Positions 3,358-24,569 of a stretch of 64,000 nt of DNA are shown here, one piece after another. Every line of letters starts with the position of its first letter. The stretch's first letter is position 1. The notes under the pieces are model-generated. The model did not search any database and was not told the origin of the DNA. It worked only from the letters and a program-made list of their open reading frames with translations. Where the stretch lies: the sequence record KX397373.1. One strand, 5' to 3'. The position numbers and the translations under genes were made by a program.

Positions 3358-3433
3358 GCGAGTATAGCTCAGCTGGTAGAGCTTCTGGTTCCCAACCAGA
3401 CGGTCGTGAGTTCGAATCTCATTGCTCGCTCCA
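3358..3433 (+). tRNA. trnG: tRNA-Gly(CCC)
   Basis: Anticodon arm TCTGG-TTCCCAA-CCAGA, U73, CCA. Confidence 0.92.
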
Positions 3434-3542
3434 ACAAAATCAATGACTTATAGCGATTTCCCCATTTCGCTACAAGACAACCTAAGTATATGTAAAACAA
3501 CCAAGACGTGTGCGAATTCGAAGTTGAGTTCTCAGACGTATT

Positions 3543-3628
3543 GGCGCGGTACTCAAGTGGTCAACGAGAGCAGACTGTAAATCTGTTGCCTTCGGGCTTC
3601 GTAGGTTCAAATCCTTCCCTCGCCACCA
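3543..3628 (+). tRNA. trnY: tRNA-Tyr(GTA)
   Basis: Long variable arm, loop CTGTAAA, CCA; single mismatches in the acceptor and T stems. Confidence 0.88.
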
Positions 3629-3634
3629 ATATTT

Positions 3635-3709
3635 GTTCCTGTCGTCTAGTGGTAAGGACACCTGGTTTTCAACCAGGCAACCGGAGTTCAATTCTCCGCA
3701 GGAACGCCA
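3635..3709 (+). tRNA. trnE: tRNA-Glu(TTC)
   Basis: Anticodon arm CCTGG-TTTTCAA-CCAGG, G73, CCA. Confidence 0.92.
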
Positions 3710-3714
3710 AACAA

Positions 3715-3861
3715 TGACACTGACCCTCGCCGCCATTGAGCAGCTTAGAGGTCTGGCAGCCAATAAAGGCATCCGTAAGTAACCGTAGCCTTCGGGCGTA
3801 GATGGTGAAAGCCGCCAAGTGCAGCCTTAGAACTCCGTGGGATTCGGAGGAGTGTCACCCA
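3715..3861 (+). ncRNA. 147-nt tRNA-like RNA with acceptor stem, T-like arm and CCA
   Basis: TGACACT (3715-21) pairs with AGTGTCA (3851-57) followed by C-CCA; stem CTCCG/CGGAG with a 7-nt loop just upstream; no D or anticodon arm. Confidence 0.55.
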
Positions 3862-3865
3862 TTTT

Positions 3866-3943
3866 AGGATTGTAGCTCAGTTGGTCTAGAGTGCCGCCCT
3901 GTCACGGCGGAGGTCGCGGGTTCGAGCCCCGTCAGTCCTGCCA
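3866..3943 (+). tRNA. trnD: tRNA-Asp(GTC)
   Basis: Anticodon arm CCGCC-CTGTCAC-GGCGG, G73, CCA. Confidence 0.95.
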
Positions 3944-3952
3944 TTTTTAAAT

Positions 3953-4028
3953 TGCGTCTTAGCTCAGTTGGTAGAGCGCACCCCTGATAAGGGTGAGGTC
4001 ACTGGTTCAAGTCCAGTAGATGCAACCA
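3953..4028 (+). tRNA. trnI: tRNA-Ile(GAT)
   Basis: Anticodon arm CACCC-CTGATAA-GGGTG, CCA. Confidence 0.95.
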
Positions 4029-4034
4029 GTATTC

Positions 4035-4110
4035 GGTTCTGTAGCTTAGCTGGTAGAGCACGCCACTCATAATGGCGCGGTCGTTGGTTCGAATCCAGCC
4101 AGAACCACCA
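4035..4110 (+). tRNA. tRNA with CAT anticodon (elongator Met or Ile2)
   Basis: Anticodon arm CGCCA-CTCATAA-TGGCG, CCA; Met versus lysidine-Ile cannot be resolved by eye. Confidence 0.9.
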
Positions 4111-4117
4111 TTTCAAC

Positions 4118-4195
4118 GGTGTATGTAGTTCAGCTGGTTAGAATACTGGCTTGTGACGTCAGTGGTCGAGAGTTCGAGTCTCTCCATACACCCCA
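4118..4195 (+). tRNA. trnH: tRNA-His(GTG)
   Basis: Encoded G-1:C73 pair, loop TTGTGAC, CCA. Confidence 0.93.
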
Positions 4196-4200
4196 ATTCT

Positions 4201-4290
4201 GGAGAATTGTCCGAGAGGCTTAAAGAGCTCCCCTGCTAAGGGAGTGGTGGCGGAAGCTGCCCGTGTGTTCGAATCACACATTCTCCGCCA
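4201..4290 (+). tRNA. trnS: tRNA-Ser(GCT)
   Basis: 90 nt with long variable arm; anticodon arm CTCCC-CTGCTAA-GGGAG; G73, CCA. Confidence 0.93.
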
Positions 4291-4296
4291 AACAAT

Positions 4297-4416
4297 AGTC
4301 GCCTAGCTCAAGATTAGAGCACACCTTACGACCAATACTGACCAACACGCACCGCGGTGCAATAATGGCGGTGGCGTGATGTGCGGTTACCGGTTCAAGT
4401 CCGGTGGTGACTTCCC
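4297..4416 (+). ncRNA. tRNA-like RNA with a 52-nt segment in place of the anticodon loop
   Basis: Intact acceptor AGTCGCC/GGTGACT, D stem GCTC/GAGC and T arm ACCGG-TTCAAGT-CCGGT; ends TCCC, not CCA. Confidence 0.65.
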
Positions 4417-4422
4417 TATAAT

Positions 4423-4487
4423 GGCTACTCCCGGTCGGTCTGGGGTCGTCTGTAAAGACGAGGATGGTTCAAATCCGTCAGTGGCAA
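4423..4487 (+). ncRNA. minimal or degenerate tRNA-like element (GTA in a 6-nt loop)
   Basis: GCTACT/AGTGGC stem, TCGTC-TGTAAA-GACGA arm, 1-nt variable region, GATGG-TTCAAAT-CCGTC T arm; no CCA. Confidence 0.45.
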
Positions 4488-4488
4488 G

Positions 4489-4561
4489 AGCGATGCTGTT
4501 AAGATGGTTAACACCCGACTCATAATCGGATATTCGCAGGTTCGATTCCTGTCATCGTTCG
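4489..4561 (+). tRNA. atypical tRNA(CAT) without encoded CCA
   Basis: AGCGATG/CATCGTT acceptor, GTTA/TAAC D stem, loop CTCATAA, canonical T arm; C at position 8 and 3' end CGCCC. Confidence 0.6.
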
Positions 4562-4570
4562 CCCTATTTT

Positions 4571-4647
4571 GGTTCCATAGCTCAGTTGGTTAGAGCGGCT
4601 GCCTGTTAAGCAGTAGGTCCCTGGTTCGAGTCCAGGTGGTACCGCCA
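4571..4647 (+). tRNA. trnN: tRNA-Asn(GTT)
   Basis: Loop CTGTTAA, G73, CCA; one U:U mismatch in the acceptor stem. Confidence 0.92.
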
Positions 4648-4652
4648 CATTT

Positions 4653-4940
4653 GTGTTGCCCTAGTCCCGAAGACGTTCCGGAAAAACCTATTCATGGTCG
4701 GGGGTAACACGAACACATTCGCTGTCTTGCATCCTTTACGTTAGTCTCCAGACGCGTTTCGGGGTGCGGGACGGTGAACCCCTTTCTGGTTGCATTTCCA
4801 TTTTCATGAACCCTGCCTGGTGTGTTGGTGTTTATGTAACCAGAATCAATTAGCCCATGCCGATGTGCTATTGTCTTCCGAACGCGACCCGCGTTCTGCC
4901 CAGGAAGACGCCTGCTGTAGTTTCAATGCCAGTACCAGGG
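4653..4940 (+). ncRNA. candidate structured ncRNA (~290 nt) at the end of the tRNA array
   Basis: 9-bp helix 4653-61/4702-10, 12-bp helix 4784-95/4834-45, nested helices 4873-79/4903-09; ORFs here lack an RBS. Confidence 0.45.
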
Positions 4941-4942
4941 AA

Positions 4943-4985
4943 GCACCTACTCTTCGGAGTAGGTGCAATCTCTTTTTATTTTTTT
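4943..4985 (+). terminator. intrinsic terminator closing the RNA island
   Basis: GCACCTACTC-TTCG-GAGTAGGTGC followed by a T-rich tract. Confidence 0.85.
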
Positions 4986-5082
4986 GCATTCAAAAATATC
5001 ACAGATATATTTTACCTATTGGAGATGAGAAAACCTTATCTCCAAGCGACCCATTCGACTATAGCCTTAAAGGAGTTATACC

Positions 5083-6060
5083 ATGCCACGTAATTATCGC
5101 CCTACTGCTGCTTCTGCCATCGATGGTTTAGTGGCTGCGCATTACAGTCGTGAAGAAGCAACCATGATTCGCCCGTTCCTGCCTTTGCACTTCGATAACT
5201 TCGTTGCATTACCGAGTGCGAACTATGAATTCTGGAGTGCGTACCGTGCGGTACAAGATGCCCTGACGTACGACCGTCACAAGTTCCGTTTCTATTTCTG
5301 GCGTGATGAAGAAAAGAGCCACATCCCAAACAGCCCGTACGTCAAGATGTACTACGAATCCCCCACGTTCAAAGCAGAGTTCAGCACCATTGAATTCATC
5401 CGTCACTTTGGCCGTGCTCTGTTTACTGACCATGGCTCAGATGGCCTGGGACGTAAGCTCAATTACGTTAACGGTGGATTACGGATTAAGACCCGTATCC
5501 TGAGAGAGTTGTTTGATGAGATTGGTAAAGAGACTGATAACCCAGCACCGTGGTTCAACGGGTATCGTCGTCCAACCATCTCGGTACTGATTCCACCCCA
5601 GCCAACTGTGTTCACTCCACGCGAAGTATTAATCGCCTGGCGTGCCGGTGAGCGCGTTCATCGTACGTTACACGGTGGTCGCTTTGACCGTAAGCAACAC
5701 TGGATTAACCCAATGCAAGATGGTTGGGATATTGCCCGCTACTTAGACTTGCAGGCATACCGTGAGTCAAAAGGTTTCATCTCTTCACAAGAGTTCCACC
5801 GTCTGCGTTCGGATGTCATCACGGTATTAACGGCCACGGATATTTTCCCGGCCTACACCATGTACCACCGTTCACTGATTCTTAACAACCATATCTTCGG
5901 CGAGTCTATCGACCCTACTGGGTATCAACGATTAGATTTGCCAGCAGTTGACAACGTTCATCCCATCGGGTACCTCACCCCGAAGAACAATTACAGCGTA
6001 ACCATGCCGAGCGATGTGTTCAGCATGTTTACACCGGATGAATGGCACGCCGTATTGTAG
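5083..6060 (+). CDS. hypothetical protein (325 aa)
   Basis: AAGGAG RBS, long ORF, terminator downstream. Confidence 0.85.
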   Translation: MPRNYRPTAASAIDGLVAAHYSREEATMIRPFLPLHFDNFVALPSANYEFWSAYRAVQDALTYDRHKFRFYFWRDEEKSHIPNSPYVKMYYESPTFKAEFSTIEFIRHFGRALFTDHGSDGLGRKLNYVNGGLRIKTRILRELFDEIGKETDNPAPWFNGYRRPTISVLIPPQPTVFTPREVLIAWRAGERVHRTLHGGRFDRKQHWINPMQDGWDIARYLDLQAYRESKGFISSQEFHRLRSDVITVLTATDIFPAYTMYHRSLILNNHIFGESIDPTGYQRLDLPAVDNVHPIGYLTPKNNYSVTMPSDVFSMFTPDEWHAVL

Positions 6061-23894: not shown

Positions 23895-24569
23895 ATGGTC
23901 AATCAAAATATTTTCAAAGAGAAATGGCTTTATCCGCAGACTGAACCGGATCAGCAAAACCGTACCCGTAAGTTGGGTATTGAGCCGAATGATTTTAACG
24001 GTGATGTCGAAGGCATGAAGTTCAACTATTCCTTCGCTAAAGGTGAAGGTCTGTACTTCTCTGCCCCCTTGACCGTTTGCCGTGACATCGTTGACACGCT
24101 GATCGCCACTCTGTCTAAACCAGAAAAATCGGTGATTAAGTTTACCAACGAAAACGGCAACAAACCGCCGGTCAGTATTCACGTTGGTCGTGATGAAAAC
24201 CTGGTACCGTTCATGGCAATCTCTGGTGAAATCCAGGGCGCAGGCGCGCGCCAGAAGAAGTTCTACTTCTCTTATCCGAAAGGCTTCCGTGTATTCCGTA
24301 ACGGTGAGCAGGTAAGCGATCTCGAATTGGCCGAACGTGCATGTCGTGCGTTTACCAAAAACTTCGACCTGTTCGTGCGTGACCTGGAAGAGAAGTACAA
24401 GCCGCGTGAGTTTAACAACACGGGTGGTGGTAACTTCGGTCGTGGCGGTTATAATGGCGGTGGCGGTAATGGTGGCGGAAACCGTGGTGGTAATAACGGT
24501 GGCGGCTATCAACAGCAGCAACAGTCTCAACCCCCGTCAACTACTGACAGCTACGACGATTTCGTATAA
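23895..24569 (+). CDS. chmC: ChmC-like nucleus-associated RNA-binding protein
   Basis: Two genes upstream of PicA; folded N-domain followed by a Gly/Asn-rich disordered tail (GGNFGRGGYNGGGGN...). Confidence 0.7.
   Translation: MVNQNIFKEKWLYPQTEPDQQNRTRKLGIEPNDFNGDVEGMKFNYSFAKGEGLYFSAPLTVCRDIVDTLIATLSKPEKSVIKFTNENGNKPPVSIHVGRDENLVPFMAISGEIQGAGARQKKFYFSYPKGFRVFRNGEQVSDLELAERACRAFTKNFDLFVRDLEEKYKPREFNNTGGGNFGRGGYNGGGGNGGGNRGGNNGGGYQQQQQSQPPSTTDSYDDFV

Follow-up and report, generated by a model that had tools for sequence, protein, structure and literature searches.

A probable tRNA mimic, tRNA-derived and non-decoding, in the tRNA array of Erwinia phage vB_EamM_Stratton

The locus at nucleotide positions 4297–4416 in the genome of Erwinia phage vB_EamM_Stratton (KX397373.1, 243,953 bp, genus Erskinevirus) probably encodes a tRNA-derived, non-decoding structured RNA, i.e. 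a tRNA mimic. The body of a tRNA is present, the anticodon arm is replaced, and the unit is conserved in related phages. The shape of this RNA cannot read a codon, because an extended stem and an additional module stand in the place of the anticodon loop. The element, to judge from its sequence, is more than a chance arrangement, because it is situated in a tRNA array, is found as a discrete module in several phage lineages and gives a 34-bit covariance match from end to end. The window analyzed here is the first 64 kb (64,000 nucleotides) of the genome, and window coordinates are the same as those of the record.

The tRNA array spans positions 3358–4647, and the element is inside it, 6 nt past tRNA-Ser. 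In GenBank the locus is annotated as STRATTON_17, a “tRNA-Ile(aat)” of 120 nt, and the copy in phage Asesino is also filed as “tRNA-Ile(aat)”. ARAGORN at its default settings is silent on positions 4297–4416. The Rfam tRNA model (RF00005) displays no match on the element, either at the gathering threshold or at E ≤ 10, and the sole Rfam match on the element at E ≤ 10 is a meaningless 14.7-bit JUMPstart. With the intron mode and a relaxed threshold, ARAGORN reads the Stratton element as Arg(gcg) with a 40-nt intron, and the copies in Asesino and in an Asesino-like phage (L008, see below) as Arg(acg) with a 48-nt intron. One gene thus gives three anticodon answers, which indicates that ARAGORN is merely closing a 7-nt loop somehow. 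The “tRNA-Ile(aat)” label is almost certainly an artefact of the intron mode, and the locus is mis-annotated. There is no open reading frame across or inside the element, and a literature search yielded no description of this gene. Two other entries of the array also differ between sources: positions 3865–3944 (STRATTON_12) are tRNA-His(gtg) in GenBank and tRNA-Asp(gtc) by ARAGORN, and the GenBank record omits a tRNA(CAU) at 4488–4563.

Blast searches show the element only in Stratton, phiEaH2 (100% identity) and Asesino (96.9% identity). Pattern scans of IMG/VR and the JGI metagenomes yielded one further carrier, an Asesino-like 246-kb phage (L008, the same as L023). The element is also carried by Logan contigs of three public runs, termed X1 (a 244,752-nt phage contig), X5 and X9 (wetland metagenome). 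Among the public runs in which the sequence was detected, no run is clearly of RNA origin. It is recorded only from Erskinevirus-type phages. The conserved block starts at position 4295 or 4297 in contigs with differing flanks and ends at 4417 in X1 and X9, with unrelated sequence beyond; X9 has 101 other letters ahead of the element, and past position 4417 there are 170 other letters in X9 and 175 in X1. Because the flanks differ in X1 and X9, the limits of the conserved block can be placed at the ends of the tRNA-like RNA.

All parts of the element are on the plus strand. The 5′ strand of the acceptor stem, AGTCGCC (positions 4297–4303), pairs with positions 4406–4412 to give 7 bp, including one G-U, and a cut by RNase P is expected just before position 4297. 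The next segment (4304–4321) consists of U8-A9, the D arm GCTC/AAGATTA/GAGC and A26, and is the same in Asesino and L008. The D stem has 4 bp (4306–4309 with 4317–4320), and its 7-nt loop has one G and no G18G19. In the 3′ part, sequence and fold display a 5-nt variable loop, CGGTT, and a T arm, ACCGG/TTCAAGT/CCGGT (4384–4405), with a 5-bp stem (4389–4393 with 4401–4405) and the loop TTCAAGT. The end of the element (4406–4416) is the acceptor 3′ strand GGTGACT, a T at the discriminator position, and CCC in the place of CCA. CCA is encoded in nine of the ten canonical tRNAs examined in ARAGORN drawings (the window has 12), the exception being the second tRNA-Met. The CCC end, the missing G18G19 and the U discriminator suggest that the RNA is not meant for charging, and it is probably uncharged.

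The intact acceptor, D and T arms had been described in a previous sequence-only reading of this DNA, as had a D loop without GG and a TCCC end. Both descriptions hold: the base pairing can be read in the sequence, the loop is AAGATTA, and TCCC occupies positions 4413–4416. That reading had also claimed that the 7-nt anticodon loop is replaced by a 52-nt insert with its own hairpin and a palindrome. The insert is at positions 4327–4378, between the strands of the anticodon stem; hairpin and palindrome were both located, and the hairpin is present in the minimum-energy fold.

The residual anticodon stem is formed by CACCT (4322–4326) and ATGTG (4379–4383), with a C × U mismatch in Stratton; relatives display CACC:GGTG here. 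Sequence and variants together show that the stem goes on for about 9 bp (CACCUUACG : CGUnnUGUG), interrupted by a single internal loop that tolerates change. Its 5′ strand, CACCTTACG (4322–4330), pairs with the 3′ strand at 4375–4383 in five of five variants. The 3′ strand, which holds the sole variable patch (4378–4381), is CGTGATGTG in Stratton, and the equivalent positions read CGTAGTGGTG in Asesino and L008, CGTACTGGTG in X1, CGTAGATGTG in X5 and CGTAATGGTG in X9. An outer helix, CAC(C):(G)GUG, and an inner helix, UACG:CGU(A/G), are intact in all five alleles. It is because these helices are kept, and because the variation is confined to a small internal loop, that the anticodon stem is taken to be extended to this length.

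Above the stem is a sequence-invariant module of about 44 nt, the insert core (4331–4374), which forms a rod or a hairpin. It has a C/A-rich stretch (4331–4349), a perfect 12-bp palindrome, GCACCGCGGTGC, at 4349–4360, and a hairpin CACCGC/GCGGTG formed by positions 4350–4355 and 4368–4373. No difference was seen in the core in the full sequences of Asesino and L008, and none is listed for X1, X5 and X9.

The minimum-energy fold of the element contains the hairpin CACGCACCGC / GCGGT-G-GCGTG and has an energy of −45.7 kcal/mol (z = −3.0; 0 of 200 shuffled sequences fold as well). At similar energies the insert may form either a rod tipped by the hairpin GCAC-CGCG-GUGC or a 10-bp hairpin, which would compete for CGUG. 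Without constraints, the optimal fold disrupts the anticodon stem; its advantage over the tRNA-like model, 1.5–3.3 kcal/mol, is too small to decide between the two. The close homologues of the element vary too little to show covariation. Inspection by eye gave no convincing pseudoknot pairing of the 19-nt C/A-rich strand with the loop of the hairpin. Hammerhead, twister and pistol cores are absent from the element, also by eye. A reading of UGAUGU...CUGA as a K-turn or C/D box was rejected, the motif being missing in three of the four other alleles.

Comparison of the insert across relatives, which the sequence-only reading had recommended, shows that it is kept in phiEaH2, Asesino, L008, X1, X5 and X9. 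All differences that could be placed are at positions 4378–4381, with two unplaced in X5, two in X9 and at most seven in X1, where the compared piece also spans tRNA-Ser. Stratton and Asesino differ at three positions of the element (97.5% identity), all within this patch. Between the same two phages the identity of the true tRNAs is 100% for tRNA-His, 98.8% for Tyr, 97.4% for Glu and 96.1% for Gly, and falls to 90% for Ser, 79% for Ile, 78.5% for Asp, 70% for Asn and 66% for the second tRNA-Met. The element is therefore as well conserved as the best-kept true tRNAs. Part of this conservation could come from recent exchange of tRNA-cluster modules rather than from long purifying selection. The patch with its five alleles could be one neutral spot, or it could be evolving under diversifying selection, as would suit a decoy for a tRNA-cutting enzyme.

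The closest canonical tRNA in the cluster to the body of the element is the phage's own tRNA-Ile(GAU). The first four anticodon-stem pairs are alike, and the first 4–5 nt of positions 4322–4330 match the anticodon stem of this tRNA. A search for a parent tRNA, in which positions 4297–4331 and 4379–4416 were used separately in Blast searches of 50,697 phage records, found none; it yielded only matches at the level of the T arm, to P1-type tRNA(CAU) genes.

A second RNA bears on the model. An unannotated 121-nt tRNA-like RNA is present in Asesino (L002:2150–2270) and in pEa_SNUABM_9 (L025:1501–1621), with 76% identity between the two. Seven compensatory pairs distinguish them: the acceptor stem and the T stem have one each, and the other five are in a long hairpin. 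The 121-nt RNA and the Stratton element have in common the AGUC start of the acceptor, the CA:UG base of the anticodon stem, an nGGUU variable loop and a near-identical T arm. In the 121-nt RNA the anticodon arm is replaced by a hairpin, about 50 nt long and nearly palindromic at its tip, as it is by the insert in the Stratton element. The sequences of the two inserts, however, do not align, the 121-nt RNA has G18G19 and an encoded CCA where the Stratton element has neither, and it occupies another slot of the array. A covariance model (R1) built from the pair of 121-nt RNAs matches the Stratton element over its full length (34 bits, E = 2e-6). Ordinary tRNAs score 36 bits with the same model, and since R1 scores both alike, the match shows tRNA-likeness and no descent beyond “tRNA-derived”. 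By analogy, the covarying 121-nt RNA gives indirect support to the tRNA-like model of the Stratton element.

In the proposed pathway, the element would be transcribed together with the neighbouring tRNAs, and host RNase P and 3′ trimming enzymes would excise it from the cluster transcript. Such processing may be expected because the “top half” (acceptor stem and T arm) and the D arm are kept. The product would be a stable RNA of about 117–120 nt. It may engage a factor that recognizes the tRNA shape, and so divert (as a decoy) or titrate (as a sponge) a host factor that targets or binds tRNA; alternatively, the tRNA body may be a processing and stability scaffold for the insert. Scaffold and decoy had both been offered in the earlier reading of the sequence. 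The non-decoding mimic that the two options share is backed by the conservation of the element and by the 121-nt RNA with its covarying long hairpin. A search of the phage genome for antisense targets of the insert gave a longest match of 11 nt, which is at chance level. A 15-mer match at position 24451 is sense-to-sense, in the GGN-repeat (Gly-codon) coding region of gp44, and is judged to be due to chance.

An alternative is that the element is a decaying duplicate of a phage tRNA-Ile-type gene that has an insertion and no function, and that is conserved through the closeness of the phages or through module swapping. This appears unlikely. The kinship of the body with tRNA-Ile(GAU) is what such an origin predicts, as is the loss of GG, CCA and the anticodon loop, and the element is limited to Erskinevirus-type phages. 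In addition, tRNA-His is likewise 100% identical in Stratton and Asesino, and near-identity alone is therefore no proof of selection. However, several true tRNAs diverge by 10%–34% in those genome pairs and the spacers are replaced outright, while 116 of the 120 positions of the element are kept. Variation is confined to the one 4-nt patch, with the helices kept in all five alleles, the arms of the element are all perfectly paired, and the sister RNA family displays compensatory evolution of the same architecture. The sequence-only reading would have recognized a pseudogene by a normal tRNA in relatives and an unconserved insert. Close relatives keep the insert, and the corresponding slot in Machinavirus has other non-canonical modules and no normal tRNA. 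Since module exchange may inflate the similarity, the dead-gene reading retains a small probability.

A specific form of the decoy role is that the RNA is directed against host defence: a tRNA-cutting enzyme of the host would bind the RNA and be unable to use it, and the 4-nt patch, with its five alleles in five lineages, would be in an arms race with this enzyme. This is improbable as it stands. Colicin D-type tRNases, in a statement cited within PMC7824862, cut the anticodon loops of arginine tRNAs, and a link of the element to enzymes of this type is speculation.

The element may also be viewed as an intron-containing tRNA-Arg(ACG), with an intron of 48–52 nt at position 37/38, that is spliced by host or unidentified phage enzymes and supplies a missing tRNA-Arg. 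The Arg(acg) call of relaxed ARAGORN in Asesino and L008 agrees with this, and the 12 canonical tRNAs of the whole phage genome include no tRNA-Arg. The 5′ half of the would-be anticodon loop is UUACGA (4326–4331), with U33 and a purine at 37, and the CGUA at the 3′ end of the insert pairs with U33–G36; archaeal and eukaryal pre-tRNAs have intron-anticodon helices. This reading is nevertheless very doubtful, and splicing of the element is unlikely. The most telling point is that the would-be intron is invariant, while variation, and in Stratton a mismatch, is found at would-be nucleotides 38–40 and the 31:39 pair. A frozen intron next to variable positions 38–40 is the opposite of what is expected of a decoding tRNA. 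The anticodon call is unstable, i.e. Ile-aat in GenBank, Arg-gcg in Stratton with its 40-nt intron, and Arg-acg in Asesino. There is no bulge-helix-bulge motif (BHB): the 3-nt bulges are absent, and the 4-bp UACG:CGUA helix is joined to the stem by a 1 × 2 internal loop and followed by a 19-nt single strand. The D loop without G18G19, the U discriminator and the CCC tail also argue against a decoding tRNA, and the 121-nt Asesino-type RNA keeps no half anticodon loop.

Enzymes for such splicing were also sought, as the sequence-only reading had advised. A six-frame Pfam search of the 244-kb phage genome, with positive controls, gave no splicing endonuclease (PF01974), no RtcB (PF01139) and no Rnl2-type ligase (PF09414); the same type of search, also with a positive control, gave no CCA-adding enzyme in the whole phage. 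In the search for Rnl1 (PF09511) the positive control was silent. According to a published survey (PMC7824862), RNA repair systems are rarer in jumbo phages of group 1 than in those of groups 2 and 3, which the survey puts down to the protection given by a nucleus-like compartment. Rfam searches of the element, at the gathering threshold and at E ≤ 10, show no group I intron and no small self-cleaving ribozyme. The insert had been called too short for a group I intron, and its 52 nt and the lack of an Rfam group I match agree with that. The non-canonical tRNA intron that had been put forward as one option thus finds no BHB, no ribozyme match, none of these splicing enzymes in the phage and an “intron” that does not vary.

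Lastly, an action of the insert at the DNA level, as an internal promoter or protein-binding palindrome in a former tRNA gene, is highly improbable: a sigma-70-like site at 4338–4366 (CTGACC, a 17-nt spacer and TG-n-AATAAT), the perfect 12-bp palindrome at 4349–4360 and a TATAAT directly 3′ of the element (4417–4422) would speak for it, but the promoter matches at 9 of 12 positions, and a 2.6-kb region contained 6 such sites for an expectation of 1.7. Relatives of this phage group are assumed to rely on RNA polymerases of their own. The TATAAT is not conserved, reading TACAAT in Asesino and TTTTAT in L008, and conservation extends over all of the tRNA-like unit and no farther, as would be expected of an RNA product.

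The array of Stratton displays other unusual tRNA-like sequences. Positions 4423–4486 of the window contain an unannotated “mini tRNA” of 62–64 nt, with a 6-bp acceptor stem, a D hairpin without linker, an anticodon-type hairpin with a loop of 4–6 nt, and the T arm GAUGG-UUCAAAU-CCGUC (fold z = −3.5). Its homologues in ChrisDB and pEa_SNUABM_4 have loops of 8 nt and 7 nt, and other records list homologues as tRNA-Met or tRNA-Ile. The second tRNA(CAU), at 4488–4563, has an 8-bp acceptor stem, a tiny D arm and a GCCC end, and scores 44 bits in Rfam; its homologue in ChrisDB and pEa_SNUABM_4 has an extra arm of about 20 nt and a total length of 96 nt. Farther downstream, on the plus strand at 4943–4976, there is a strong terminator-like hairpin (10-bp stem, UUCG loop and T run) inside the annotated coding sequence gp19 (4790–5131). 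This hairpin is a candidate end point of the RNA-gene island, and it casts doubt on gp19 as a coding sequence.

In Machinavirus, the slot right after tRNA-Ser, which has the same AAACAAT spacer, is occupied by a different module of about 90 nt (GAACGT...AGCGTTC-ACCC) with a CCC end. It is found at L003:2168–2258 (ChrisDB), at about L004:2113–2213 and at about L005:2487–2835; in the last of these, pEa_SNUABM_10, the two ends of the module are about 340 nt apart. The same phage has a tRNA-like piece at L005:2498–2573, with a D arm, TAGCTCAAAGCTTAGAGC, close to that of the Stratton element; a 7-bp stem with a UUCG tetraloop replaces its anticodon arm, and its T arm is atypical. Both pSal-SNUABM-04 (L027:3014–3118) and pEa_SNUABM_29 (L030:3733–3836) have an RNA of about 100 nt that ends in CCA and in which an acceptor stem and a T arm are accompanied by three small hairpins; its acceptor stem covaries between the two phages. 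L008 has, on the minus strand at 3370–3450, a tRNA-like module TCGACGG...TGGG-TTAGAAT-CCCA...CCGTTGA between the element and tRNA(CAU), which is absent from Asesino. Parshik (L026:3416–3509) and two IMG/VR sequences (L006:1790–1882 and L007:11485–11576) have AAU/UAU tRNAs with long variable arms, which are unusual for the Ile type. The long-arm tRNA(UAU) genes seen in the IMG/VR pattern scan are unrelated to the element.

In the more distant Machinavirus and Seoulvirus phages this part of the array thus contains non-canonical modules of other kinds, and for this reason tRNA mimics look like a regular feature of these phages. Several different mimics are present in the arrays of Erwinia and Salmonella jumbo phages, which suggests that these phages make regular use of tRNA mimicry. 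A phage tRNA cluster is commonly taken to be a list of decoding tRNAs, to which STRATTON_17 would be an exception. Mimicry of this kind may counter host defences that target tRNAs, or small RNAs may be carried on a natural “tRNA scaffold”. The element is short and discrete and belongs to a culturable phage-host pair, so that it is directly testable.

The element can be compared with several known RNAs. It has the acceptor, D and T arms of a canonical tRNA (RF00005), the T loop UUCAAGU, U8 and A14; unlike a canonical tRNA it has no 7-nt anticodon loop, no stable anticodon call, no G18G19 and no CCA. In common with the intron-bearing pre-tRNAs of archaea and eukaryotes, its insert is at the canonical intron place and has a 3′ end that forms pairs with the would-be anticodon, but the element has no BHB. 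Both tmRNA and YrlA resemble it in having a tRNA-like domain and a long helix that replaces the anticodon arm. Neither assignment was retained. For tmRNA, the 3:70 pair is U-A and not G3-U70, ARAGORN with the -m option finds no tmRNA, and there is no tag open reading frame. For YrlA and the Y RNAs, no Rfam YrlA match overlaps the element and the phage has no Ro/TROVE protein; YrlA is also circularly permuted relative to the Stratton element.

The closest precedent, by analogy, is the pair of T4 RNAs rnaC (“species 1”) and rnaD (“species 2”). These are inside the phage tRNA cluster and are annotated as small stable RNAs, and the Stratton element is likewise in-cluster, non-coding and tRNA-like at its termini. 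The sizes are 139 nt for rnaC, 119 nt for rnaD and 120 nt for the Stratton element. T4 rnaC has a terminal T arm, CCGGG-UUCGAAU-CCCGG (GGUUCGAAUCC), and paired termini, i.e. a tRNA-like top half, by virtue of which tRNA-processing enzymes could cut it out. It lacks the D and anticodon arms, and rnaD lacks the T arm, whereas the Stratton element keeps the D arm and the base of the anticodon stem and ends in CCC. No Blast link connects the T4 RNAs with the element, and R1 gives no match on the rnaC/rnaD region; the likeness would be functional, with no membership by descent. No function is known for rnaC and rnaD. If read as a mimic, the Stratton gene adds a clean case to a small, old class, the tRNA-shaped stable RNAs from phage tRNA operons (e.g. 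T4 RNAs C and D), and in the Stratton case the whole tRNA body is kept and the anticodon loop alone is swapped.
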